Under the pieces are notes generated by a model, which worked only from the letters and a program-made list of their open reading frames with translations, was not told the DNA's origin and made no database searches. From NCBI RefSeq assembly GCF_009834535.1, contig NC_045711.1, positions 35,774,001 through 35,838,000 of the forward strand: a stretch of DNA of 64,000 nucleotides, in the 5' to 3' direction. This stretch comes from Camelus ferus. Its lineage: Eukaryota. This document shows, one piece after another, positions 16,178-44,459 of the stretch (the stretch's first letter is position 1; every line of letters begins with the position of its first letter). A program made the position numbers and the translations under genes.

Positions 16178-16471
16178 NNNNNNNNNNNNNNNNNNNNNNN
16201 NNNNNNNNNNNNNNNNNNNNNNNNNNNNNNNNNNNNNNNNNNNNNNNNNNNNNNNNNNNNNNNNNNNNNNNNNNNNNNNNNNNNNNNNNNNNNNNNNNNN
16301 NNNNNNNNNNNNNNNNNNNNNNNNNNNNNNNNNNNNNNNNNNNNNNNNNNNNNNNNNNNNNNNNNNNNNNNNNNNNNNNNNNNNNNNNNNNNNNNNNNNN
16401 NNNNNNNNNNNNNNNNNNNNNNNNNNNNNNNNNNNNNNNNNNNNNNNNNNNNNNNNNNNNNNNNNNNNNNN
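16178..16471. other. Assembly gap (294 N), expected to contain the last PSME3 coding exon
   Basis: Run of N. Preceded by a pyrimidine-rich acceptor-like stretch and followed by 3'UTR-like sequence; the PSME3 C-terminal codons are found nowhere else in the window. Confidence 0.9.
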
Positions 16472-19303: not shown

Positions 19304-22300
19304 ATGAATCTCAAGGTAGTCCTCGTGTTCCTGGCACTGTCCCTCATTACCATCTTTGCCCTGGCCTATGTCTTGCTGACCAGCCAAGGTGGCTCCAGCC
19401 AGCCTCCCCGCTGCCCCTCTGTATCCCACAGTGCCCAGCCCTGGACACACCCTGGCCAGAGCCAGCTGTTTGCAGACCTGAGCCGAGAGGAGCTGATGGC
19501 TGTGATGAGCTTTCTGACTCAGAAGCTGGGGCCAGGCCTGGTGGACGCAGCCCAGGCCCGCCCCTTCGACAACTGTGTCTTCTCAGTGGAGCTGCAGCTG
19601 CCCCGCAAGGCTGCAGCCCTGGCCCACCTGGACAGGGGGAGCCCCCCACCTGCCCGGGAGGCACTGGCCATTGTCTTCTTTGGCGGACAACCCCAGCCCA
19701 ACGTGACTGAGCTGGTGGTGGGGCCGCTGCCACGCCCTTCTTACATGCGGGATGTGACTGTGGAGCGTCACGGGGGCCCCTTGCCCTATCATCGACGCCC
19801 TGTGCTGAGAACCGAGTCTGCCCAGATGTGGAAACATTTGAAAGAGGTGGAGCTCCCCAAGGCACCAGTCTTCCTGGCTTCTGTCTTCAACTACAGTGGC
19901 TCCACTTTGGCAGGTCTGCACGCCACCCCTCGTGGCTTACGCTCGGGGGACCGTGCTACCTGGATTGCCCTCTACCACAACATCTCAGGTGTTGGAATTT
20001 TTCTTCACCCCGTGGGGCTGGAGCTACTGCTGGACCACAGGGCCCTGGACCCTGCCCACTGGGCTGTCCAGCAGGTCTTCTATCTTGGGCACTACTATGC
20101 AGACCTGAGCCAGTTGGAATGGGAGTTTAAGGCTGGCCGGCTGGAAGTGGTTAGAGTTCCTCTACCCCTGCCAGATGGGACCTCATCCCTGCGGTCCCGG
20201 ATCTCCCCAGGTCCTCTTCCCCCTCTTCAGTTTTCACCTCAGGGCTCCCGGTACAGTGTCCAAGGGAACCTGGTGGCGTCCTCTCTCTGGACGTTTACCT
20301 TTGGCCATGGAGTGTTCAGTGGCATGAGAATATTTGATGTTCGGTTCAAGGGCGAGCGAGTGGCCTATGAAGTCAGTGTCCAGGAGTGCGTATCTATCTA
20401 TGGTGCTGATTCACCCAAGACAATGATGACCCGATACTTGGATAGCAGCTATGGACTTGGCAGTCACAGCCGGGGCTTGGTGCGGGGAGTGGACTGCCCC
20501 TACCAGTCTACCATGGTGGACATCCACATATTAGTGGGCAAAGGGGTAGTCCAGCTGCTCCCAGGGGCTGTGTGTATATTTGAGGAGGCCCAGGGACTAC
20601 CCCTCCGAAGGCACCACAATCACCTTCAGAGTCATTTCTATGGTGGTTTGGCTGGCTCGGCCCTTGTAGTCAGGTCTGTGTCCTCTGTAGGCAACTATGA
20701 CTACATTTGGGACTTTGTATTGCACCCAAATGGGGCTCTTGAAGGGCGGGTCCATGCCACAGGCTACATCAACACAGCTTTCCTGAGTGGGGGACAGGAG
20801 AGCCTTCTTTTTGGGAACCGCGTGGGGGAGCGAGTGCTGGGGGCGGTGCACACACATGCCTTCCATTTCAAGCTGGACCTGGATGTGGCAGGTGAGTGCC
20901 CAGGGGGTGAGGGTTGAGAGTTGGGGTGGGCCAGAGGGAAGGGAGACCCCCATATCGAGCCAGAATAGGAAAGCATGGCATTCCCACACAATTTAGCAAC
21001 AGCAGGGACTGATTTGCATGTATTCAGCTGCAGTCAGCCTGAGGTACTGGGCTCACTGGACATGTGGCAAAAGGTAGAGAGGGCTCCCCCCCTCCCCCCC
21101 GCCCAGGCCCCTCTGACCTGCTGCAACTGTGAAACTAAATGTAATGGCTGCGCTGGCTGCCTTGGCCTGTCTGTAGGTGGTGACCTGGCCCTGTCTGGCA
21201 CCAGTTGCAGCTGGAGCTGGGACTCCTGATTCTGAGAGTCAGTGGAGGTGGGGAGAGCAGGGGCCCGAGCGGACATGGGAAGCAGTCTGTCTAAAGAGGT
21301 TTTCAGAGTGGAAGAAATTCTGGGGCCTGAGAAAGGGAGGTGCTGGCTGGGGACTGCTCCACAGGATTTCAGACAAGCGGGGCTATGGGACAGGCCTCAT
21401 CCTCCTGGGGACCGGGTGGGGAGGGGCATCCTGTTCCTGCCAGCACATGTCATCACAGTGGGCTGTCCTGTGACATGGCAGGCACGCAATAGTCTTGCTG
21501 CAAGGGTGGAAAGGGATTTCTCAAGTAGGGTTCAAAGCACAAAGGAGACTTTCTCTTCCTGCCAGATTTTTGTGCAGGACAGAAAATTACCAAATTGGAC
21601 TATTATACCCAGAAAGAAAATTAGGAATCTACCAGGCCCTCTCCAGTTTACAGTTGTGGAAACAGGAGGGTGCATGGAGGTGGGTCAGGAAGTGACGGCC
21701 CAAGTATAATGCAATGTAACTCAGCATATTTCTTGTGAAACATTTTCATATCCTCTTTGAGTATAAAGATGGTGTGTATGTGGGGGGGGGGTGGAGGGGA
21801 GGGAGAGCTAAGAAAATAGCATGATTGAAATGCTATTTTCAATCATGCATAGTAACGATTATTCTTTGACATATTTGGAATATGACTATTTTCTGATTTG
21901 AAGATCCCCCCCCCCCCCAGCATTTTGGCATTAAACAGCCTTGTCTTGGGATGTAAAATCAAGTAACATTGGATCCCTAGAGTATGCAACAGAGGCTGGT
22001 GCTGTGGGCCAGAGATGCTGTGTCAGGCCCCTGGGCACAGGACGACGGGCAGAGGCACTGGCTTCAGTAGAGTGCCTCCCTGTGCCAGAGCCTTCTTAAG
22101 AGTTATGTTTAAAGGAACCAGTGGTCCAGACCTGCAGAGTCTAAGTGTTCCAAGGATCTCCCTGACAATTTAAAGATAAAAATCTACTTACTTATAAAAA
22201 AGTCTGAAAGTGGTCCCTGCCATATTGAAAAAAAAAATAGCAAAGTCTCAGAACGAGGAGGATTATGCAGGGCACCATGGGAGGAGATTGGGTTTTTCCA

Positions 22301-24191
22301 GCCAGCTTCTCCAAGACAAATAGCCCGTTCCTGGTTAGAAGCATGTTACTAGCCACCTGTATGTGCTTTTCTATTTATAGAGCTCAGCCACAGAACAACC
22401 TTTATTATGCCCAGTATAGAGATTCATAGAGTGAGAATCAGAGAAGCCAAGAATTGGTCCAAAGTCTACTGGGTAGACCAGTGCTAATAGAACTTTATGC
22501 AACGATGGAAATGTTCTCTGCCTGCAGTGTCCAATATGTGAGCCACTAGCCACAGGCAGCTATTGAGCACTTGAAATGTAGCTAGTGTGACTGAGGAACT
22601 GAATTAAAATTTTTTTTGGTGGGGGAGATAGTTAGGTTTATTTATTAAATAAACTGGGGAGGTACTGGGGATTAAACCCTGGACCTCGTGCATGCTTACC
22701 ACTGAGCTATATCCTCCCCCCAACCCCGGATTTTTAATTGAAATTGAAATAGCCACTTGTGACCGGTGGTAACAGTATTGGACCAGGGCACATTTGAAGA
22801 AGACAGGCTATCCCTCAAATCCAGACCTGACTCCCAGCACGAGTGCTCTCTGATGAGCTTTGTTAGGCCAGTGTAGTGGGCGTCATGGAGAAGACGAGGG
22901 ACCTGTCTCACCTGGTGTGGAACTCCTCTCCCTCCCCTCACCCTGGCAGGGCTGAAAAACTGGGTCGTAGCTGAAGACGTGGTGTTTAAACCTGTGGCAG
23001 CCCCTTGGAGTCCGGAGCACCAACTGCAGCGCCCACAGCTGACTCGGCAGGTCCTGGGAAGGGAGGATCTGACAGCTTTTCTTTTGGGGAGCCCCCTTCC
23101 CCGCTACCTTTACTTGGCTAGCAACCAGACTAATGCCTGGGGTCACCAGCGCGGGTATCGAATCCAGATCCACAGCCCCTTCGGCATACACATGCCTCTG
23201 GACAGCGACATGGAGAGGGCCCTCAGCTGGGGGAGGTGAGGAGGGCCCTGGGCACTGGGTGGTAGGGAAGGACCAGTCCCCTTCCCATCCTGGCTCTTGG
23301 AGACCCCAACTCACTACCCTTGCTCCAAACCTCATCTCAGATCCAAGTAGATATGGGGTGGGAAATGGTCTCAGACAGAAATCTGATCCAAAGGACTTCC
23401 GGGCTGATAAAGGCCCTTGGCATTTTCTGATACCACCTTCCTACAAACATTCCTGGTCAGATACCAGCTCGCGGTGACTCGGAGGAAGGAGAAGGAGTCA
23501 CAGAGCAGCAGCATCTATTACCAGAATGACATCTGGACACCCACTATGGCCTTTGCTGACTTCATCAACAATGAGACCCTCTTAGGAGAGGTTGGTAGCC
23601 CTAGGGACACAGAAGAGGGGCTCCCCTGAGCCTGGTGTCTTGGCTGCCCGGCCCCTGGCTATAGGATGGAGGGAATGGTGGGTTTCCCACCATTTGATTA
23701 GGAGCCAGGGAGCTCCCTAATGACCAGAAGGGTCATCCCTTCCCGGGGTGAGATTAGCCCTGGGACTTAGACCACCCTACGGCTTCTCAGGGATTATCAA
23801 ACCTTGGGCCTGAGGCTGGGCGGGGGTGGAAGCAGGCGGGACTGGAGGTTGGGGATTGTGGCTGAGGGGAGATTCTCTGCAAGGGTCTCACCTCCAAAGT
23901 CTCTGGCTCCTCCTCTTCCTTCAGGACCTGGTGGCTTGGGTTACAGCCAGCTTCCTGCACATCCCCCACGCTGAGGATGTCCCCAATACAGTGACTCTGG
24001 GGAACAGAGTTGGCTTCTTGCTCCGACCCTATAACTTCTTTGATGAGGACCCCTCCATCTTCTCCCCTGACAGCGTCTACTTTGAGAAGGACCAGAATGC
24101 TGGGCTCTGCAGTGTCAATCATGTGGCCTGCATCCCCCACCTGGCGTCCTGTGTCCCGGATCTGCCCCCTTTCTCTTACCAAGACTTTTAG
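19304..24191 (+). CDS. AOC2: Retina-type copper amine oxidase, 756 aa (exons 19304-20891, 22950-23235, 23461-23590, 23925-24191)
   Basis: Exons of 1588+286+130+267 = 2271 nt with open frame and GT/AG sites. N-terminal anchor [28 protein letters not shown]2-type SVGNYDY TPQ motif, catalytic Asp (RYLD), copper ligands HTH and HIPH. Confidence 0.97.
22478..22790. mobile_element. MER3 (hAT-Charlie) relic in AOC2 intron 1, split by a SINE
   Basis: aatagaacttt...tgtccaatatg..agccactagccac..tattgagcacttgaaatgt..aaatagccac..tattggac matches the recalled MER3 consensus. Confidence 0.8.
22611..22721 (-). mobile_element. tRNA-Ala-derived SINE with a short internal deletion, nested in MER3
   Basis: Same head and tail as other copies; lacks about 12 nt of the anticodon region. 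Confidence 0.8.
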
Positions 24192-24717: not shown

Positions 24718-25211
24718 TGGAAGGAAGACAAGAGTTCCAAGGTATCAGAAAAGAAACATCTGGCCCTGGGGAAGTGGGGACTGGAGGAAGAAATGGGGCT
24801 GAGGGGGATGAGGGGCTGCCTCCTTGCGGGTGGTGCATTTCTGTGCTCAGGCTGGTCAGTTGCATTATTTTGAAATCCCCTCCACCCCTTCCCCCTACCT
24901 CAGCTCTCCTCTGTTCCAACCCTGACCCAGAGAGCAGAGTCTGAATTGGAGCCTGGGAGACAAAGCCATGTAAGGTCTATGGAAATTGCTGCTACCCTGC
25001 TTCAGGCCCGCCCTCCAACCCCAGCCTGCCCCGCCCCCTCCCCAGCCTTCCCTGCTCTTCCCACCCTCAGTCTCCTTTGCGTCGGAATACTGAGAACCTC
25101 AGCCAGAGTCCAGAGCTCCCAATACAGGGGTTAAAAGAGACCTTCTTCAGCTCGCCTGAGAATACATATCTCGATTTTTGTTCAACCCTCCATCTCTATG
25201 TTCTTGGGACA

Positions 25212-28200
25212 ATGAACCAGAAGACCACCCTGGTGCTCCTCGCTCTGGCTATCATCACTATCTTTGCCTTGGTGTGTGTCTTGCTAGCTGGCAGAGGAGG
25301 AGATGGGGGTGAATCCAGCCTGCCTGCCTTCTGCCCCTCCGTATCTCCCAGTGCCCAGCCCTGGACACACCGTGGCCATAGCCAGCTGTTTGCAGACCTG
25401 AGCCGAGAAGAGCTGGCAGCTGTGATGAGATTTCTGACCCAGAAGCTGGGGCCAGGACTGGTGGACGCAGCCCAGGCCCAACCCTCAGACAACTGTGTCT
25501 TCTCAATAGAGCTGCAGCTGCCCCCCAAGGCTGCAGCCTTGGCCCACCTGGACAAGGGGAGACCCCCGCCTGCCCGGGAGGCACTGGCCATCGTCTTCTT
25601 TGGTAGACAGCTCCATCCCAACGTGACTGAGCTGGTGGTGGGACCACTGCCCCACCCCTCTTACATGCGGGATGTGACTGTGCAGCGTAATGGGGGACCC
25701 CTGCCCTATCACCGACGCCCTGTGCCCATCCGAGAGTACTTGGACATAGACCACATGATCTTCAACAGAGAGCTGCCCCAGGCTGCTGGGCTCCTCCATC
25801 ACTGCTGCTCCTACAAACGCCAAGGACAGAACCTGGTGACAATGACCACAGCCCCTCGTGGTTTACAGTCAGGGGACCGGGCCACCTGGTTTGGCCTCTA
25901 CTACAATATCTCAGGAGCTGGGTATTACCTCAATCCTGTGGGGTTGGAACTACTGGTAGACCACAAGGCTCTGGACCCCACCGGCTGGACCATCCAGAAA
26001 GTGTTCTTTCAAGGCCGCTACTATGAGAGTCTGGCCCAGCTGGAGGAAGAGTTTGAGGCTGGCCGGGTGAATGTGGTGGTGGTCCCAGACAATGGCACAG
26101 GTGCATCCTGGTCCCTGAAATCCCCGGTGCCCCGGGGTCTGTCTCCCCCTCTGCAGTTCCATCCCCAGGGTCCTCGCTTCATTGTCCAGGGGAGTCGAGT
26201 GGCCTCCTCATTGTGGACTTTCTCTTTTGGCCTTGGAGCTTTCACTGGCCCAAGGATCTTTGACATCCGCTTCCAGGGAGAACGTTTAGCTTACGAGATC
26301 AGCCTCCAGGAGGCCTTGGCCGTCTACGGTGGAAATACCCCAGCAGCAATGATGACCCGCTATATGGACGGCAGCTTTGGCATGGGCAAGTACTCCACAC
26401 CTCTGACCCGTGGGGTGGACTGCCCCTATCTGGCCACCTACGTGGACTGGCACTTCCTTCTGGAGTCCCAAGCCCCCAAGACACTACACGATGCCTTCTG
26501 TGTGTTTGAGCAGAACCAGGGCCTCCCACTGAGGCGACACCACTCATATTTTCACTCCCACTATTTTGGGGGCCTTCAGGAGACTGTGCTGATCATCAGA
26601 TCTGTGTCCACCTTGCTCAATTATGACTACGTGTGGGATATGGTCTTCCATCCCAGTGGGGCCATAGAAGTCAAATTCCATGCCACGGGCTACATCAGCT
26701 CAGCGTTCCTCTTTGGTGCTGCCCGAAGATTCGGAAACCAGGTTGGGGAGCACACGCTGGGCACCATCCACACCCACAGTGCCAACTTCAAGGTGGATCT
26801 GGATGTGGGAGGTAAGACATCCTGGCGGAGGCAAGGATTCAGAAGAGGAGCCTAAAGAGTTGTCTGCATTTGCTTTGAGTTTTATGGAGGTTTTCCAGGA
26901 AAGGAAGATCTGAGCCTGAGTGGTTTTGGAATTTCATGCTTCCTCTTTTGCTGGATGGGAGAGAGCTGGCTGCTGAATGTCACTGAGAGGTTAACTCACT
27001 GGCTGGGTGCAGCCCTGCCACCCTCTCTCCACTTGATTTCATCCGAAAATCTTGGGCAATAGCTCAGCTCAGGCAGGATCTGGGCTAAGGGTCCCTATTG
27101 CCCTCTTCCTTCCCTGGCACTTATATGGGCTTCATTTTAGCGAGGCAGACATTTGTTTTTTGGCTCATCTGTGTCTGGCCTGCAGTGCTGGTGTTTTGGA
27201 AGATCTGTTTGCTTTCTGCCGAGTCCCTGGCACATGTAGGCTAATCAGGGAATATCCCAGATTGTACGTTTCCTTGGAAGGTGTTCCCTCCTCTTCCCTG
27301 AGTTTCCCTCTGGGCACAATACATTTAAGTGTGAGGGGTAGAGTGACTGCTGTGGAACATTCCGGGTAGTTCCTGGAGTTGGTGGTCACATAGAGAGCCA
27401 AGGCTACATGATGTCTTAGAGGCCTTGTCATTTTTCACTGTCCTTCCCCACATTGAGTTAATCACCAGATTTTTTTCTGTTCTGCCTCTGAAACATCCCA
27501 AACTGCTCGCTAGACCCCACTGCCATCCCTCTGTTGAGCCAGTCCTCTCTTTGCCATTTTGACTATTCTTCCTCTCAGATTCAGGGCTCAATCTGCACCC
27601 AGAGGGACCTACCAGCCCATGCCAGCATGCTCCCTCACACACCTCCCACGTTCCCCATCACCTATGGGACCCTGTCCACAGAGGGACCTACGAAGCCCTT
27701 CCCCTCAGAGTGCAGCTCCTGCCTGCCTTTCATATTCTCCCCCAGGGCTGCATTAGCTGCACACACACCCTGCCTGGCCCTGGACACACACAGCGCCCAG
27801 GCCAGTCGGGCTGTTTTTCTTTTGCTCATGTTTTGGCCCTGCCTAGAATGCCCTGCCGTGTCATCTCTGCTGATGACATCCCCTGAGGACAGGCTGAAGC
27901 GTTGCCCAGGAAGGCCCCCACTCCTGCCTGCACCTGTGTTCCTCTAACCTTGAATCGTGAGCGTGCTCTTCTGGCACTGCAGGCCCCTCAGGGCTTTGCT
28001 CCTCTGTGGCTTCAGTGGGAGCAGGAGGGTAAGAATAAAGTTTCATTCACCTGTATGTCCCCCGCGCCGAGCACAGGCCTCTCCACTAATGGGTGTGAAC
28101 GGATGAATGAATGAAATCCTTGAAGACATATTTCACAGGTCAACAGCTTTGGCTGAAAGATGGGGGATAACTTGTCAAGACGGGAGAGAAGCAGGGGGCA

Positions 28201-30199
28201 CACTCAGTCTGGGCTTCTCTTTGGCCTCCACTCTGAAGCCAGGTGGGGGCAGAGTCCAGAGAGGGTAGGGCCACCGTATGACCAGCCCTCCCTCCCACCC
28301 TTCCCCTTCACCCACCTCCACCCAACCCTTGCAGGAGTGGAGAACTGGGTCTGGGCTGAAGATATGGCTTATGCCCCCTCGGCGGTACCCTGGAGTCCTG
28401 AGCACCAGATACAGAGAATGCAGGTGACTCGGAAGTTGCTGGAGACGGAAGACCAGGCTGCCTTCCCCCTGGGAACTGCCCCGCCTCGCTACGTGTACCT
28501 GGCCAGCAACCACAGCAACAAGTGGGGCCACCCTCGGGGCTACCGCATCCAGGTGGTCAGCTTTCCTGGGGAGCCGCTGCCCCAGGCCAGCTCCATGGAG
28601 AGAAGCCTCAGCTGGGCGAGGTGGGTGGCACGGTGTGTGTGTTTTGTGGAGTGGGAAGGGGCGGAGAATGAGAGTGAGAAGGGAGTGTTGGGAGGGGCAC
28701 TCGGGAACTCAGTTCAAATTTTATGCGAGGTGAGAGAAGAACTCAAAAAGGATTTCCTGGGTATCAAAATTCACACAGTGGATGGATACATGGCCCCCTT
28801 GGAATACTAAAGCCCAGATGGCAGAATTCTTTTCTGTTTTGGAGAGGCCATGCTGTGAAATGACAAGGGGTGAACAGGAGGACATGGAAAGATGTTGGGC
28901 AACCCATTAGGGTGGCATCAAAGTCACTGTGTGGATGAGATGGGAAAGCTGAGGTCCATGTGCTGGGCTCCCTTCCCCAATAATCAGGAGGCAGGATGGG
29001 GCTAGTGACCTGGAGGCCTGACTAGTACAACTCTAGGTACAAGCTGGCCGTGACCCAGAGGAAGGAGACAGAGCCCACCAGCACCAGCATCTTCAATCAG
29101 AATGACCCCTGGACCCCCTCTGTGGACTTCTCTGGCTTCATCAACAACGAGACTATTGCTGGAGAGGTCGGTTGACCACGTGGGGACTGAGGGAGGCGGG
29201 CAGGGGCCCAGAGATGAGCCCCGCCTTTTCCTGGGGGTCCCTGAAAGCCATCTATCTCCTCAAAGGCAGAGCTGACTCCTGCCTTCTGTGGATCCGATCA
29301 TTACCTGTTGAGGGAATCTTCCCAAGCTGGGAGTTCACTCGTACACACTGGCTGAGGCACCAGCCTCTCCTCAAGACACTACAGCCTTCTAAGTCTCAAC
29401 TTTGTGGACTTGGCCCTTTTAGGGCCCCAGGACTCAGGAGTGCTGAAAGTCACCAAGGAAGGCCACATAGCTTATATCTAAAGCTTCTTCAGTCCTGGCT
29501 TTACCACTAAAGGATTAATTTTTAAATGTCGGACTTTTCTGCTTCCCAAGCCCTGAACTTCCCTCCTCCATCCGCCTCTCAGTTAGAGTTTAGGAACTCT
29601 CTCACAGAGTTAGGGGAGAGGAGCTAAGTAGCTGGTGGGTGTCATCATTCCTCTGGGGGTGGGTAGGCTGATGGAGATGCTATGGGGAACATCAGAGATG
29701 GTGGGTGTGGGCTGGCACTGGGGGCAGGTGTGGCTCCCAATATGAAATTGACTATGCTTTGACTTCTGGGCTAGTAGGAAACATGTTTAAAGAGTTAAAA
29801 TCCTTCTGAGGGAAGGTGGGCTGGCAAGGTGAATCATTCCATACAAGGCCACTGTGGGGGAGGGGGCAGGTATGTCTTTAGCAAAGCCAGGCCTTATAAT
29901 CCTTTTTCTTCACCCCTTGCTAGGACCTGGTGGCCTGGGTGACACCTGGTTTCCTGCACATCCCGCATGCAGAGGACGTCCCCAACACGGTGACTGCAGG
30001 GAATGCCGCAGGCTTCCTCCTCAGACCCTACAACTTCTTTGACTACGACCCCTCCTTTGATTCTGCTGACTCTGTCTACTTCCGGGGGGACCAGGATGCT
30101 GGGGCCTGTGAGATCAACCCCCTGGCTTGCCTTCCCAAGGCTGATGCCTGTGCCCCCCACTTCCCTGCCTTCTCCCACGCAGGCTTCGCTCATAACTAG
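25212..30199 (+). CDS. AOC3: Membrane primary amine oxidase / VAP-1, 763 aa (exons 25212-26811, 28335-28620, 29037-29166, 29924-30199)
   Basis: 1600+286+130+276 = 2292 nt. Type II anchor [25 protein letters not shown], Asp386 (26367-26369), TPQ Tyr471 in LLNYDYVWD (26622), HTH and HIPH ligands, RGD in exon 4; residue numbering equals human AOC3. Confidence 0.97.
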
Positions 30200-30660
30200 G
30201 TGGGCCCTGGGATGAGGATTTTGACTGGGGCCCTTGGACCAGGAAGTGTGGGAGGGGAGGCAACAGGCACTGGGCAGGGCAGCCTGTGCCCTCCTCACAC
30301 CCCAAGGTCCTCTCTCTCCCATTGTCCTCCCTGCCTCCCCCTCCCTGCTGGGAGCATCCTGAGCCTGTGACACCTGACACAGGGGGCACTTGGCTTTGTG
30401 GACCCCAGACCTGCTGGGCTCCTGTCCCTGAGAGGAGAGGAACGGCCATTCGGGACCGTGGAGTGATGATGGTTAAGCTTTTCCCAGAAGACTCCTGTTT
30501 TTGGTTTTGCTTTTTGGCTGTCCCAAACCTTTTTAGGACATCCCAATTCTCTCCTAAGACTCTCCAGTCCTTCCCTTGGGAGGCAAGGAAGAAGGCTCTC
30601 TATGGGGATAGCCCCCTAGAGGCCCCAGGGCAGGGTTCCTGCCAGGCCTATAACGCCATG

Positions 30661-36422: not shown

Positions 36423-37841
36423 AAATGACCCCTTATGTTTAATTTCCATATCAAAATATAGCTGATTGCATAAATGAGCTGATATCTGGATAATCTGACC
36501 TTTCTGGTGTTGATTTACCTGGTTTAACTGGTTCCAAGATTTCTTAACTCTTTTCCTGCAATTACTACTTTGCTTAAAACACAAGGCTTCCCGACCTGCC
36601 TGCCTCCCCTCCCACCTCGCACCAAGGACACTGACCTTTTGGCCGTTCCCTGCCCATGTCAATGCTGTTTCAACTTTCTATACCTTTTCACCTCCTGTTC
36701 TCTTCAGCTGAACATCCAGTCTGTTCTCCCCCAGGCCCATGCATCTGTCTATCGTGGCTTCCTGAAGAAATGTTCCTGGACATGTCCAGGTTAGAAAGTC
36801 TTCTCCCCCAGGATCATAAAGGAAAGCATGTCCCCTCTCTGGAACCCTCAGTTTCTCTTAGTTCTGGACCTGGCTGCCCAGAAAGTGGAGGTGCTTTCGC
36901 TCTCTGCCTCTACAACATTTTGGAGGAGGGTTTCCTGGAGATGAGGGTTCTAGGCTGCTAGGTTAATTTTATAGCCAGTTTTCCAGGCACCCTGAGCTCT
37001 AACCTGACCCATCAGCCCTGCTCGAGGGATGGATGGGGGTCTCTGTTATACTGCCACCCCACCACCTACTCTGACTTCGGATTGGCTCTACCCTCCTGCC
37101 CGCGAATGCTTCCCTCCAGTGATTTAGGGTCCTCAGGGCCTCCAGTATGTTGACCTGGCTCAGCCCTTCAGCCCCCCAGCTCTTCCCAGGTGCTTTGTGT
37201 TCTCAGTAGACCTCTCAAGCCTCCCAGGGAGTGGATTCCAGTAGGATTCTGGTTGATGGGGGGTGGGTAGCAGTAGACAGTGATGAGGAGCAGAGCCTGG
37301 AGGGCATCACAAACTAGAGAGAGGAAGGAGGGAAGCAAGCTGGAGGGGTGAGCACAGGTGAGTTTTGCTTGCAGCCTTGTAGCCAGGAGAAAGATTCCAT
37401 CCAGAGGGTAGAGGAAGAGCCCAAGGACAGTCCCTTTCTGCCCCTGTCAGTTCTTCCTCTTGCTGCACTCGCTCCAGCTGTGTTAATGCCAAAGCCCACC
37501 CCTCCCCTGCTTCATTCCCAACCTTGAACTTGAGTGTTTGACTTGGAACCGGAGGACAGGCTTACATGGGCCATTGAAAGTCCAGGTTCCCACCTGAGCC
37601 CCGCCTCCCAAGCCTGGCCAGACTCCTGGCACCGTCCACTTCCACCCCCTCCCAACCCTCTGTACTTGGCTGCTTGTCTTCAATGTACCCATCATGCCTC
37701 TTTCCCAGAAAAACCACCCAGAGACCAAGCACCTCTGGAGACTGAAAGAGACATCCTGCACTCAGGTCCTGTTGGTCGATCTTTTTATCTTGCATTCTGC
37801 ATTCTGATTCAAGAGACTGAAGACAGCCAGGAGCTTCAGCT

Positions 37842-40800
37842 ATGGCCCTCTTCATTCTTTTGTGTAGTGTTCTGGTGATGGCCATGGGTGAAGGTGGTGC
37901 TGGGAGTAAGGAAGGAGTAGGGAAGGAATGTAAACCCAGCTGCCCCTCCGTATCTCCCAGTGCCCAGCAATGGACACACCATGGCCAGAGCCAGCTGTTT
38001 GCAGACCTGAGCCGAGAAGAGCTGGCAGCTGTGATGAGCTTTCTGGCCCAGAAACTGGGGCCAGACCTGGTGGACGCAGCCCAGGCCCAACCCTCGGACA
38101 ACTGTGTCTTCTCAATAGAGCTGCAGCTGCCCCCCAAGGCTGCAGCCTTGGCCCACCTGGACAAGGGGAGACCCCCGCCTGCCCGGGAGGCACTGGCCAT
38201 CGTCTTCTTTGGTAGACAGCTCCATCCCAACGTGACTGAGCTGGTGGTGGGACCACTGCCCCACCCCTCTTACATGCGGGATGTGACTGTGCAGCGTAAT
38301 GGGGGACCCCTGCCCTATCACCGACGCCCTGTGCCCATCCGAGAGTACTTGGACATAGACCACATGATCTTCAACAGAGAGCTGCCCCAGGCTGCTGGGC
38401 TTCTCCATCACTGCTGCTCCTACAAACGCCAAGAAAAGAACCTGGTGACAATGAACTCAGCCCCCCGTGGTTTGCAGTCAGGGGACCGGGCCACCTGGTT
38501 TGGCCTCTACTACAACAACTCAGGGGCTGGGTATTACCTGAACCCCTTGGGGTTGGAACTACTGGTAGACCACAAGGCTCTGGACCCCACCGGCTGGACC
38601 ATCCAGAAAGTGTTCTTTCAAGGCCGCTACTATGAGAGTCTGGCCCAGCTGGAGGAAGAGTTTGAGGCTGGCCGGGTGAATGTGGTGGTGGTCCCAGACA
38701 ATGGCACAGGTGGGTCCTGGTCCCTGAAATCCCCAGTGCCCCCGGGTCTGTCTCCCCCTCTGCAGTTCCATCCCCAGGGTCCTCGCTTCATTGTCCAGGG
38801 GAGTCGAGTGGCCTCCTCATTGTGGACTTTCTCCTTTGGCCTTGGAGTTTTCACTGGCCCAAGGATCTTTGACATCCGCTTCCGAAGGGAGAGAGTGGCC
38901 TATGAGGTCAGCCTCCAGGAGGCCTTGGCCGTCTACGGTGGAAATTCTCCTTCTGCTCTGAGAGGCCGGTATGCGGACAGCAACTTTGGCTTGGGCTACT
39001 TCTCCACACCTCTGACCCGTGGGGTGGACTGCCCCTATCTGGCCACCTACGTGGACTGGCACTTCCTTTTGGAGTCCCAAGCCCCCAAGACACTACACGA
39101 TGCCTTCTGTGTGTTTGAGCAGAACCAGGGCCTCCCACTGAGGCGACACCACTCAGATGAGACCGCCTACTATTTTGGGGGCCTTGCAGAGACAGTGCTG
39201 GTTATCAGATCTGTGTCCACCATGCTCAACTATGACTATATATGCGATTTGGTCTTCCACCCCAATGGGGCCATAGAAGTCAAAGTCCATGCCACGGGCT
39301 ATATTGGTTCATCGTTCCTCTTTGGTGCTGCCCGAAGATTTGGAAACCAGGTTGGGGAGCACACGCTGGGCACCGTCCATACTCACAGTGTCAACTTCAA
39401 GGTGGATCTTGATGTGGGAGGTAAGACATCCTGGCGGAGGCAAGGATTCCAGTAGAGGAGGATGAAGTCTTCATGCCTAGCTTTAAAATTGTCATTGAAA
39501 CCTTAAAAATGTACAAGTATATGAAGTAAATGTGAAAGTCATCGAATTCCTTCGAGATTTTCACCCTTAGATGTCTGTTCTCTCATGCTTAAGAAAATTC
39601 TTCCGTCTTTTAAAACAGTGGGTCTGCAATTCTAGAGTATATTATGGTGTTTACTATGTACAAGATAAGCTATACTGATAGGCATATTTAGATTTTTACT
39701 ATCAAATTTCAACCATACTGTACACATATATTGTCACTTCTGTTTTCTTGCATAACAACATATCACACTCATGCAAGCAAGGAATATTTACTGAATGCAT
39801 ATTTGTGCCGAGCACTGCGCTTAAACAATTTAACAAAAGAAACAACGTCCCTGCTCTCAGGAGGTTTACATTCTAATGGAGATGCAGAGAGAGCATGGAG
39901 AACTCCCAGAAAATGTGTGTGATTGAAATATTTTTACACTTAACCTCTTTGTGTCTCAGCTTAACTCAAGTATAAAAATGGTATAGGCAGCGCATTCCTC
40001 ATAAGATTGTTGTAAAGATTAATGGTGACTATTTTAAAACCTTTTGTCTTTTGAAATAACTTTAGACTTAGAGAAAAGCTGCAGAGATTATACAGAATTC
40101 CCATAAACCCTTCACCATCTCCCCCTCATATTAACGTCTCACATAACCATAGGATAATCAAAAGCAGGGAATTAATATTATTATCATACTATAAACCATA
40201 GACCTTAGGAGAATTTCATCAGTGCTTCTACTAATTTTCTTTTAGAAGATACTGGTCAATCATTTTGTAGGGTGTCTTTCAATTTGGGTTTCTCTAATAT
40301 TTTCTCATAATTAGATTGAGCTTGTGTTTTTGTTTTTGTGGTTTTTTTTTTTTTTTTTTTTTTGGCAAGAAAACCACAGAAATGATGTATCTCCTCCCTA
40401 GAGCATCATATCAAGGGTACATGATGTCCATATGTTGTCTTATCAGTGATGTTGACCTCAAGCAGTTGTTTAACGTAGTGTTTTCCAGCTTCCTTCGTCG
40501 TAAAAGTTAGTATGTTTCCATTTGCAATTAACAAATATTTGGGGGAAATTTTTGATGCTATGCAAATATACTATTTATTTTCTTCTCAAATTTCTTTTTT
40601 AAAATTTTTTAAAAATTTATTTTTAATGGAGGTGCTGGGGAATTGAACCCAGGACTTCGTGCATGCTAATTGAGCATTCTACCACTGAGCTATACCCTCC
40701 ACCCCTCTTCTCAAATTCTTGCCTGCTAATTTTAGCATCTATTGGTGGATTTTTCGATGCAACAATTATTGTTGCTGTTTCCCTCCTAGTCATTTAAATG

Positions 40801-42887
40801 TTTTCCCTTATTCTTTATACATTAATAATTGGAATTCTCCATAAGAAAGTCTTATCTCTCCTTTTCCCTCATTGTAATATATGTAATCATTTATTCATTA
40901 CTGTATAAATTCATGGATATTTTATTCTAAGGGTTAAAACCCAGTACTATTGTTTATTTTGTTCCTTAAATTGTTCCAGTTTTGGCCATTGGGAGATCCT
41001 TCAGGTTGATTTCTGTGTCCTTCTGACATGCCGCCATCCTTTTTTAAGCATTTCTTTACTTTCTGGCACCATAAGATGTTCTAAATCCATCTGGTATTTT
41101 CTCTGCTCCAGCCCTGGAATCAACCACTTCTCCAAGAATCTCTGGCTCCTTTATTGGAGAATAGTATGTAGAAGCCAAGATCTGGGTACCAGGTGTGCTC
41201 ATTATTACTGGGATGTTGCTTTTAGGCTCTTATTGGACTTAGAAAATATATGTATGTATTAGAACTAACACAACATGTCCCTCTTTATCTCTACATCTAA
41301 GCAATGGCAACTTTTCAAACACTTGGAACTGCGCCTGACACACACTGAGAAATATTAGCTATTGTTGTTGCTGTTATTATCCACATGAGCCTACTAGTGT
41401 GGATATATCAGAATGAGAACTCTTTCCCTTTAATTGTCCTCTACAAGTAGGCACTGTAGAGTGTGGACTAGGAGCAGTAATCCACAAAAGGAAACTGAGG
41501 GTTTGCTCAAACAGTCTCTGCTCTCTTTGATCCTTGGAAGGTATGGAGGGAGCTTCCAGCATGTTTTGGTTTACTGCTCTTTGGTCTCAGATCACTTAAG
41601 TTGCCTCATAATATGGAACCTAGTTGGACTCTAATAAAATCATTCAAAATTCCAAATATTCAGGCAACAGACTGTGCCTTTGGCCTTCCTCTTAATTCCT
41701 TTCCAAACCCCAAACAATAGAAAACACCTGTAAGCTCCAGCAATGTTGGGCCCAGGGTCTGCCTTTCCTTCCTTCTAGCCTGCGTGTCTGCTGTCCATGT
41801 GTGATGGGACCACTTTATGTTGGTCTCCTCTGGGTCCTGTAGAGCCAGACCAAGACCTGGGTCCCCAGCCCTGTCATGAAACTAACCAAGTGCCCTTGGT
41901 GACAAACCAGGGCACATTATTTAAATTCCCTAATTCTCAGTTATCCCATCTGTAAAATGGGAACAACTACAGTTCCTCCTTCATAAGATAGTTGTGCAAG
42001 TAGAGCATCACTACATGTAAAGTACTCAGCACCCTGCCTTGCAGAGCTTTTTCAAGTTCAACAATTGTGAGCTACCACTGTTATTATTTACATGATAAGG
42101 CAGTCTGGTGATGCCATAAGGCTTCAGATGTGAGGTGCAGACCCTTTCCTCAGGTCAGAAAGAAACTGACTCTGCACATTGCCTGCTCAACTGCTCCAAC
42201 CTCAGGTAAACCATTCTCCCTTTAGCTCCTCAGAGGGACAAAGTCACTGGAAGCCCAGTCACAAGACATCTGGGATGATTACTGGATATGATATCCGGGG
42301 GAAGACTTTCTCCAAACTCTGGATCTGGGGTATCTTGACAAGAGGGGAAGGAAGCAAGGGGCACACTCAGTCTGGACTTCTCTTTGGCCCCTCCTCAGAA
42401 GCCAGGTCGGGGCAGAGTCTAGAGGGGGTAGGGCCACCGTATGACCAGCCCTCCCTCCCACCCTTCCCCTTCACCCACCTCCACCCAACCCTTGCAGGAG
42501 TGGAGAACTGGGTCTGGGCTGAAGACACGGCTTTTGTCCCCACGGCGATACCCTGGAGTCCTGAGCACCAGATACAGAGGCTGCAGGTGACCCGGAAGTT
42601 GCTGGAGACGGAAGACCAGGCTGCCTTCCCCCTGGGAACTGCCCCGCCTCGCTACGTGTACCTGGCCAGCAACCACAGCAACAAGTGGGGCCACCCTCGG
42701 GGCTACCGCATCCAGGTGGTCAGCTTTCCTGGGGAGCCGCTGCCCCAGGCCAGCTCCATGGAGAGAGCCTTCAGCTGGGCGAGGTGGGTGGTGGGGTGCC
42801 AGAGAGGCACTGGGGGAGGCAGATTGTACAAGAGGCTCCATGTTGCTGGGAACCCAGGTTCCCCCACCTCCCGTGGGTGTGCATGCA

Positions 42888-42935
<48 letters not shown>

Positions 42936-44146
42936 CCCTGCAGCCACAATCTTAGGCCACTCAAAATGAATCCTACTGGTTGGATGGATGAATGGAGAGA
43001 TATGTGCTGAATCAGATACAACAAAATGTTCCAGGTAGAATCTAGGATGTGAGCATGTGGGTGTTTACTATTCTTTCAACTCTTCTCTATGTTTAAAATG
43101 TTTGCAATCAAGGTTGGAAGGGAAACAAAGAAGAAGAGAGGAGCACAGATCTGAGGGGGTGTCCCCTAAAATCCAAGCACATAAGATACTGAAATTGACC
43201 TAAGATGGGAATCAGGCTGTGTCTGGGCATATGCATCCATCTGGATGGACACATGAGCGACAGTCCCATCTGAAGTCTGAACAGCGGGCCAGTAGATGTT
43301 TGAGATACAGGATATTGAAGAAATGCAGGAACTTTAAGAGAGAAAGAACGGGAAGTGGACAAAGAATAATAAAGAGGTTTGATACCCTGAGACCTCTGTG
43401 CTCATTTCCCCTTCATGTCCCCACCCTAGTGCAGCTTCAGGCAGCGGGACGGGTCGATTGAACTTGGGGGTCTAATCCAAATCCCCTGCAGGTACCAGCT
43501 GGCTGTGACCCAGCGGAAGGAGGAGGAGCCCAGCAGCATCAGCATCTACAATTTGAATGACCCCTGGACCCCGACCTTGGACTTCACGGACTTCATCAAC
43601 AATGAGACCATCGCTGGGCAGGTGAGTCGAGAGGGAGGAGGTGGGGGTCAGAGGCGGACGAGGGGGAGCAAGGACGAGCCACCTCATTCTCTCCTAATCC
43701 AGAGTCCTCCAGGGGGTCTTTGGAGCCCACCAAGGAAGAAAGCATTATAATTTCACATTTTTCCTGGTCTGGTGAACTGAATCGTTCCACACAAGGCCAC
43801 TGCGAAGGAGGGGGCAGGCATGTCCTTAGCAAAGCCAGGCTTCAAAATCCTCTTTCTTCACCCCTGCTAGGACCTGGTGGCCTGGGTGACAACCGGTTTC
43901 CTGCACATCCCACATGCAGAGGACGTTCCCAATACGGTGACTGTAGGGAACGGAGTGGGCTTCTTCCTCCGGCCCTACAACTTCTTTGACCAGGACCCCT
44001 CCTTTGACTCTGCTGACTCCATCTACTTCCGGGCAGACCAGGATCCTAGGGCTTGTGAGGTCAACCCCATGGCTTGCCTCCCCAAGTATGCAGCCTGTGC
44101 CCCGGACCTCCCTGCCTTCTCCCACGGGGGCTTCTCTTACAACTAG
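37842..44146 (+). CDS. AOC4: Secreted plasma-type copper amine oxidase, 756 aa (exons 37842-39420, 42498-42783, 43492-43621, 43871-44146)
   Basis: 1579+286+130+276 = 2271 nt, open frame, GT/AG. Short hydrophobic leader [16 protein letters not shown] then [14 protein letters not shown], as in bovine serum amine oxidase. Catalytic Asp379, TMLNYDY with Tyr464, HTH and HIPH. Position between AOC3 and G6PC1 matches AOC4/AOC4P. Confidence 0.93.
40040..41270 (-). mobile_element. Old L1 (L1MB/MC-like) 3' region in AOC4 intron 1
   Basis: Characteristic L1M 3' sequence; explains the longer AOC4 intron 1 (3077 bp) versus AOC3 (1523 bp). Confidence 0.7.
40596..40700 (-). mobile_element. tRNA-Ala-derived SINE nested in an L1 in AOC4 intron 1
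   Basis: ggaggtgctgggg-aattgaacccagg...accactgagctataccctcc. Confidence 0.8.
42889..42934. repeat. (CA)23 microsatellite in AOC4 intron 2
   Basis: Read directly. Confidence 0.95.
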
Positions 44147-44459
44147 ATGGGCCCTGGAATGGGGATTTTGGCTGGGGACCCAGGACTGGGAAGTGTGGGA
44201 GGGGAGGCAATGGGCACTGGGCAGGGCAGTCTGTGCCCTCTTCTCCCTCCTCACACCCCAAGGTCCTCTCTCTCCCACTGTCCTCCCTGCCTCCCCCTCC
44301 CTACTGGGAGCATCCTGAGCCTGTGACACCTGACACAGGGGTACTTGGCTTTGTGGACCCCAGACCTGCTGGGCTCCTGTCCCTGAGAGGAGAGGAATGG
44401 CCAGCCAGGAGCCAGGAGTGATGGCCAAACTTTTACCAGAAGACTCCTGTCTTTTCTAA

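Follow-up and report, generated by a model that had tools for sequence, protein, structure and literature searches.

The primate red and green opsin genes (OPN1LW and OPN1MW) are tandem paralogues that are homogenised by gene conversion, with the codons for spectral tuning being kept distinct. A comparable pair, AOC3 and AOC4, is present in the 64,000-nucleotide stretch of Camelus ferus DNA studied here (the window), which carries a tandem cluster of three copper amine oxidase genes, AOC2, AOC3 and AOC4. As in the opsin pair, whose features are taken from general knowledge, AOC3 and AOC4 are in tandem on the same strand, their silent-site divergence has been erased and a few function-defining codons are left as islands, which is attributed to selection. 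Unlike in the opsins, the protected sites line the substrate channel of an enzyme and include a loop island of 40 codons. In addition, a third gene, AOC2, appears to join the process over 375 bases, and the same pattern has arisen independently in many orders of placentals.

The reference AOC4 enzyme is bovine serum amine oxidase (BSAO; PDB 1TU5/2PNC), which is secreted. Like camel AOC4, it is anchor-less and has Asn at position 212, Tyr393-Phe394 and Met468. Its 376-391 segment is AOC3-like (TPAAMLTRYMD), unlike that of camel, pig, yak-787, horse, elephant and primate AOC4. BSAO is thus a conversion mosaic itself and atypical of the AOC4 family.

For the motif T/S-X1-X2-N-Y-D of these enzymes, Lopes de Carvalho et al. 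are said to have assigned in 2019 a Leu at X1 to AOC3 and a Met to AOC4. The X1/X2 classification rule and the rule based on residue 212 are both cited in later works (PMC12058724; PMC7144023). AOC4 has been described as having no membrane anchor (PMC3382800), the position of Thr212 is occupied by Asn in serum amine oxidase (PMC7144023), and AOC3 and AOC4 form a combined clade (PMC12058724). In full-text searches combining these terms with AOC3/AOC4, "gene conversion" and "concerted evolution" were absent from the amine oxidase papers matched, a coverage outside which the 2019 phylogeny and the Schwelberger papers fall; the only matches for "gene conversion" were two reviews of pseudogenes in cancer. 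The process is classical, and for AOC3/AOC4 it has apparently not been described previously.

Mosaic structure of camel AOC3 and AOC4

Exon 1 of AOC3 was compared with that of AOC4 at an offset of +12609. The homology block found by self-BLAST consists of exon 1 minus the part encoding the anchor or signal, plus about 40 bases of intron, and exon 1 of the two genes differs at 47 encoded amino acids. The first-pass annotation, which was made from the letters of the window, had claimed that tracts of identity, synonymous sites included, alternate in this exon with strongly divergent islands. The comparison reproduced all the claimed tract identities (Table 1), the tracts being maximal and bounded by mismatches, and also the islands, with 31 mismatches in 117 bases at 26276-26392 and 35 in 265 bases at 26547-26811. 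The peptides quoted for the two proteins are all present. In a 12-sequence alignment containing 513 variable sites, the longest difference-free run of the camel pair spanned 69 variable sites (25496-25791; permutation p<=5e-5).

Residues 1-538 of camel AOC3 align gaplessly to the human AOC3 chain 1pu4_A, and therefore the human numbering (Asp386, Thr212, Leu468) can be used directly. The codon of the catalytic Asp386 is located at 26367-26369, in an island that carries the AOC4 signature ending in [HY]F.

Apart from exon 1, homology between AOC3 and AOC4 was found in exon 2, together with about 170 bases of the upstream intron, and in exons 3-4, at 83-87% identity. The remaining introns and the spacer were unalignable both by self-BLAST and in a four-way gene alignment, in which mismatches reached about 50% outside the exons.

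Table 1. Position of the amine oxidase genes, conversion tracts and islands in the window.
Feature	Position	Partner or aligned position	Strand	Description
AOC2	19304-24191		+	4 coding exons, first member of the cluster; tblastn with bovine AOC2 (P0116), 93-95% identity in four blocks
AOC2 segment	19411-19785	AOC3 25331-25705; AOC4 37940-38314	+	First 375 bases of the exon-1 block
AOC3 coding sequence	25212-30199		+	Exon 1, 25212-26811; exon 2 from 28335; exon 3, ~29032-29166; coding end of exon 4, ~30199
Exon-1 homology block	25331-26850	AOC4 37940-39460	+	Self-BLAST; 93.7% identical overall
Tract 1	25488-25792	38097-38401	+	0/305 mismatches; bounding mismatches 25487/25793
Small island	25793-25938		+	Residues ~194-243; holds codon 212 (25845-25847), ACx (Thr) in AOC3 and AAx (Asn) in AOC4 (25846 C>A)
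Tract 2	25939-26103	38548-38712	+	0/165 mismatches; bounding mismatches 25938/26104
Further conversion tract	26135-26238		+	Single mismatch (26225)
Asp386 island	26275-26392	38884-39001	+	Codons 355-394; 32 mismatches/118 bases (31/117 over 26276-26392, plus 26275)
Tract 3	26393-26546	39002-39155	+	1/154 mismatches (at 26460); bounding mismatches 26392/26547
Arm I tip	26547-26561		+	Codons 446-450; YFHSH in AOC3, DETAY in AOC4
Codon 468 (motif position X1)	26613-26615		+	Leu in AOC3, Met in AOC4 (26613 T>A)
Camelus-lineage conversion, AOC4 to AOC3	28274-28633	~42438-42796	+	Exon 2 and upstream intron flank; patchy
AOC4 coding sequence	37842-44146		+	Exon 1, 37842-39420; other exons ~42498-42787, 43490-43621, 43871-44146

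The mosaic in other assemblies and species

The dromedary, from an independent assembly (L008), gave 2/305, 0/165 and 2/154 mismatches in the three tracts vs 31/117 and 34/265 in the islands, and the alpaca (L002) 1/305, 0/165 and 1/154 vs 31/117 and 32/265. Tracts and islands alternate in like manner in the warthog and donkey assemblies.

Over approximately 726 coding bases scored in the tracts, the synonymous divergence (dS) between paralogues was 0.017 in camel, 0.011 in alpaca, 0.005 in warthog and 0.031 in donkey, and that between orthologues of different species was 0.21-0.32. Tracts are thus similar between paralogues and normal between species, in agreement with the homogenisation claimed by the first-pass annotation. 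Since the silent rate between species is normal, the identity cannot be put down to silent-site constraint, which was ruled out as its cause. At the island 26239-26392 paralogue dS (0.50-1.05) exceeded orthologue dS (0.28-0.40). The ratio of nonsynonymous to synonymous divergence (dN/dS) was there 0.14-0.36 between paralogues, and omega within each orthologue set was 0.09-0.33. The islands are preserved old divergence and not the result of recent positive selection, which is unsupported by these paralogue ratios and by the ancient signature of the Asp386 loop.

The bovine AOC4 used as reference was the zebu gene of 787 amino acids. An open exon-1 copy lying just 3' of AOC3 in Bos taurus (L003 22894-24414) was tried as reference and dropped, as it has no gene called, its motif is TLFNYDY (Phe at X2, that is, LFNYDY) and several of its substitutions are odd, for example Cys in place of Arg; this copy may be a paralogue that is decaying or has escaped annotation. 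In warthog (L005 10001-33823) the range annotated as the AOC3 gene spans 24 kb and engulfs AOC4, which probably reflects read-through or chimeric transcript models made likely by the similarity that conversion maintains.

Phylogeny of tracts and islands

In the tree of the tracts, copies grouped by species or lineage, with support of 98 for camel AOC3 plus AOC4, 100 for camelids, donkey and warthog, and 94 for bovines. This is the opposite of a grouping by orthologue, which would speak against conversion. Monophyly of AOC4 was rejected in the tracts (log-likelihood difference, delta lnL, 454; approximately unbiased, AU, test p=3e-5). The tree of the island 26239-26392 joined the AOC4 copies of camel, alpaca, zebu, warthog and donkey in a 98% clade and rejected clustering by species (delta lnL 117, AU p=8e-9). 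When 29 proteins were used, the hare, gundi and sirenian copies paired within their lineage in the tract tree (98-100), and the island tree contained a 98% AOC4 clade including elephant, dugong, hare, loris, macaque and tupaia. An AOC4 island clade crossing orders indicates that the duplication took place before the placental radiation and that homogenisation has recurred in many lineages.

Taken together, four features of concerted evolution were present: paralogues closer to each other than orthologues are, silent sites included; conflicting trees of adjacent segments; diverged flanks that were left unconverted; and species-specific substitutions shared by both paralogues, with donor and acceptor identifiable. 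These results demonstrate the paralogous conversion mosaic, its age structure and the ancient orthology of the islands, and they bear out the earlier claim of homogenisation.

Ongoing conversion and its direction

Camel and alpaca have the island boundaries in common. Both paralogues shared a species-specific base at six to seven sites when these two species were compared (25496, 25726, 25841, 25983, 26026, 26174 and 26182). The 735 bases of tract contained no fixed difference between paralogues and 6 such shared sites, vs 71 fixed differences and 1 shared site in the 620 bases of islands (Fisher p=2.7e-8); the probability of six parallel hits by chance is 6.5e-10. Conversion consequently continued after the split of camel and alpaca. 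Position 26174 has changed in both paralogues since the split from dromedary, that is, within Camelus.

As for direction, dromedary AOC4 gained the AOC3 states at 25909 and 26104-26105, an AOC3 to AOC4 transfer. The reverse was found in the exon 2 region. There, about 35 sites are identical in camel AOC3, camel AOC4 and alpaca AOC4 and differ from alpaca AOC3, which holds the outgroup state at 28324, 28396, 28475-6, 28483 and 28553. Camel AOC3 states are retained inside the region at 28363-28379, 28418, 28604-28607 and 28629-28631. This pattern of sites points to a patchy AOC4 to AOC3 conversion in the Camelus stem. Conversion between AOC3 and AOC4 is therefore ongoing and proceeds in both directions. 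A clear signature of biased conversion was not found, the G+C content at third codon positions being higher in the tracts by 0.03-0.09 only, and the same trend in AOC2 makes this measure uninformative.

Exon 4 and about 300 bases of 3' untranslated region (29830-30502 and 43778-44455) are 86.7% identical between AOC3 and AOC4. This value approximates the divergence of laurasiatherian orthologues and hints at an older conversion there.

Island residues and the substrate channel

The AOC4 marks, namely N212, the 376-394 loop ending in [H/Y]F and M468, are common to camel, alpaca, pig, yak-787, donkey, dugong, elephant, hare, loris, macaque and tupaia. Their AOC3 counterparts are T212, AAM(L/M)TRY(M/I)DGSFGMGKY and L468, and the sites that are diagnostic between the two orthologue sets are 212, 363, 378, 380, 391, 393, 394 and 468. 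Among the islands listed by the first-pass annotation, T212N, the 378-394 loop and L468M are thus ancient marks of AOC4 across mammals. The list has to be narrowed in two places, as G205E/Q206K and the arm-tip DETAYY are limited to camelids.

The pocket and channel residues described for human AOC3 include Asp386, Tyr384, Phe389, Met211, Tyr394, Leu468, Leu469, Thr210, Thr212 and Tyr176, and the Arm I residues Asp446, Leu447 and Tyr448 are placed in the channel of the partner monomer (PMC7144023). The residues named in that review differ between camel AOC3 and AOC4 at 212, 394, 446, 447, 448 and 468, which is 6 of 17 (Fisher p=0.003). This agrees with the earlier proposal that the divergent codons lie on the active-site channel.

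Probable selection on the islands and alternative explanations

Interlocus gene conversion with channel codons spared by selection is, in our opinion, very likely the explanation of the mosaic. AOC3 and AOC4 are same-strand tandem paralogues, 12.6 kb apart, that arose by a duplication preceding the placental radiation. Recurrent non-allelic conversion transfers short tracts, some tens to a few hundred bases in length, in both directions, presumably through the repair of double-strand breaks with the paralogue as template, and resets the divergence of the regions concerned in exon 1 and exon 2 to near zero. Alleles in which AOC4 channel codons were overwritten would have an altered active-site channel, and most of them would be purged by purifying selection. 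The codons protected in this way would be Asn212, Met468 and those of the 378-394 loop next to Asp386, with [His/Tyr]393-Phe394 among them, and they would for this reason survive as islands. In the Asp386 island, the divergence of 20-26% is probably a further factor that suppresses the formation of heteroduplexes and makes the borders sharper.

It could also be that the islands persist for mechanical reasons only, through heteroduplex rejection in diverged segments and with no selection for substrate specificity. The divergence of the Asp386 island agrees with this, as do its borders, which lie at about 26275 and 26392 and are sharp in camel, warthog, donkey and cattle, and the overwrites that did occur, such as that of M468 in pig and that of the loop in BSAO, were tolerated. 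However, we consider this explanation improbable because T212N and L468M are single-base differences with homogenised flanks and are nevertheless maintained across placental orders, 25846 C>A and 26613 T>A being present in all six within-lineage pairs (6/6). The T212N of warthog is nearly isolated, in a stretch of 833 bp (25443-26276) with only 4 differences, the nearest others being 22 and 133 bp away. One mismatched base is not enough to stop conversion, and such sites are therefore better accounted for by converted alleles being purged through purifying selection than by a homology barrier. In addition, purifying selection acts on every island when its orthologues are compared with each other. 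Mechanics may contribute at the Asp386 island, which is divergent enough to hinder heteroduplex formation. From these sequence comparisons we infer that selection, and not mechanics alone, protects the islands, and that these would set substrate preference.

Several points weigh against islands spared by selection. Many AOC3 models of pig (P0032 and related ones) carry Met468 in an exon 1 that is otherwise AOC3-type. The BSAO of bovids, including that of bison (P0016), is AOC3-like at 380-391, although it keeps N212, YF393-394 and M468. An anchor-less AOC4-like copy of gundi (P0054) has T212 and the AOC3 loop. Islands have accordingly been overwritten in some lineages, and the pig, BSAO and gundi cases indicate that some overwrites are tolerated. 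Moreover, the channel mapping takes the residues named in one review and not distances in the three-dimensional structure. Finally, the partitions into tracts and islands were drawn from the camel pair, which makes the statistics of that pair partly circular; this does not apply to the tests with warthog, donkey and alpaca or to those at the protein level. N212, [H/Y]393-F394 and M468 are kept in every clearly AOC4-type copy except the gundi gene and one hare model (L468). The suggestion of the first-pass annotation that selection keeps two substrate pockets thus stands as an inference in so far as single-base islands persist in homogenised DNA, and has to be softened in that sparing is not absolute in other lineages.

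The natural recombinants of pig, bovids (BSAO) and gundi break the published classification rule. Some pig models also mix exon-3 states, which may be due to AOC3/AOC4 annotation read-through.

A recent duplication of AOC3, independent in each lineage and with a rapid and convergent divergence of the pocket thereafter, would fit the published full-length trees, in which AOC3 and AOC4 separate "in a species-specific manner" (PMC12058724). However, this is very improbable. The introns and the spacer are unalignable, exons 3-4 are 13-16% divergent, and the order AOC3-AOC4 is conserved in camel, alpaca, dromedary, donkey and warthog. The paralogue dS of the island (0.5-1.05) lies above orthologue dS, AOC4 island copies are united across orders, and the AU test rejects clustering by species. 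Recent duplications were ruled out by the introns, the island dS and the AU tests.

Assembly collapse, or an extreme purifying selection reaching the silent sites of the scaffold, has practically no probability: perfect identity over 305 and 165 bases could in principle be a collapse in one assembly, but the same mosaic in the independent dromedary, alpaca, warthog and donkey loci rules this out, and the between-species dS of the tracts is normal.

The amine oxidase cluster

The window corresponds to the AOC2-AOC3-AOC4 tandem cluster of Camelus ferus/bactrianus, flanked by PSME3 and G6PC1, and its three genes are all intact and on the same strand. Gene order and spacing are identical in camel, alpaca and dromedary, and AOC4 also follows AOC3 in donkey and warthog. 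A run of 294 N is present at 16178-16471, upstream of AOC2.

The splice sites, which were read, place the last base of AOC3 exon 1 at exactly 26811. The protein begins with the membrane anchor MNQKTT... and has Leu at X1 and X2 and Thr212. AOC4, whose start is 12.6 kb downstream of that of AOC3, is annotated as "primary amine oxidase, liver isozyme", and a signal-peptide-like N-terminus replaces the anchor. The gene at 37842-44146 was assigned to the AOC4 subfamily by its motif STMLNYDY (Met at X1, Leu at X2), Asn at 212, the lack of an N-terminal anchor and its position 3' of AOC3. The residues encoded by exon 1 fully match the Camelus ferus/bactrianus proteins P0123 (AOC3) and P0001 (AOC4), and mismatches occur solely where the translation runs on into the intron at its 3' end. 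The 5' leader of AOC4 (37790-37870, compared with 25200-25290) looks like a fossil of the AOC3 start in which ATG has become AAG. The AOC4 start codon is aligned to an ATC within the AOC3 anchor, which suggests that the AOC4 signal peptide is a truncated anchor.

The distance between AOC2 and AOC3 in the 375-base segment was 1.9% in warthog, 4.3% in cow, 5.1% in donkey and 10.4% in camel. Directly downstream it was 38-39% in all species, with a sharp break at about 25706-25725. In the tree of this segment AOC2 groups with AOC3/4 by species (support 99/88/81), camelids excepted. The AOC2 segment thus appears to take part in a three-gene homogenisation in other lineages.

Implications

It seems fairly probable, with less assurance than for conversion itself, that recurrent AOC2/AOC3/AOC4 conversion across placentals explains why AOC3 and AOC4 are inseparable in published trees, and that the natural mosaics narrow the specificity of the serum oxidase to approximately four positions (212, 393, 394 and 468). 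This would give a mechanistic reason for a puzzle of the literature, in which AOC3 and AOC4 cluster by species when full-length sequences are used, yet a few active-site residues classify them cleanly. For annotation, it would mean that whole-gene trees or percent identity mis-assign AOC3 and AOC4 and that the island codons are preferable.

In screens for inhibitors, human VAP-1 is widely replaced by bovine plasma AOC4 (PMC12914920), and the residues that escaped homogenisation would be a likely source of the inhibitor differences between species and isozymes. If this is true, the natural mosaics constitute an evolutionary chimeragenesis experiment, since the islands kept and lost are not the same in the camelid, pig, BSAO and gundi copies, and they would point to a short list of residues separating the serum polyamine-oxidising enzyme from the membrane VAP-1.

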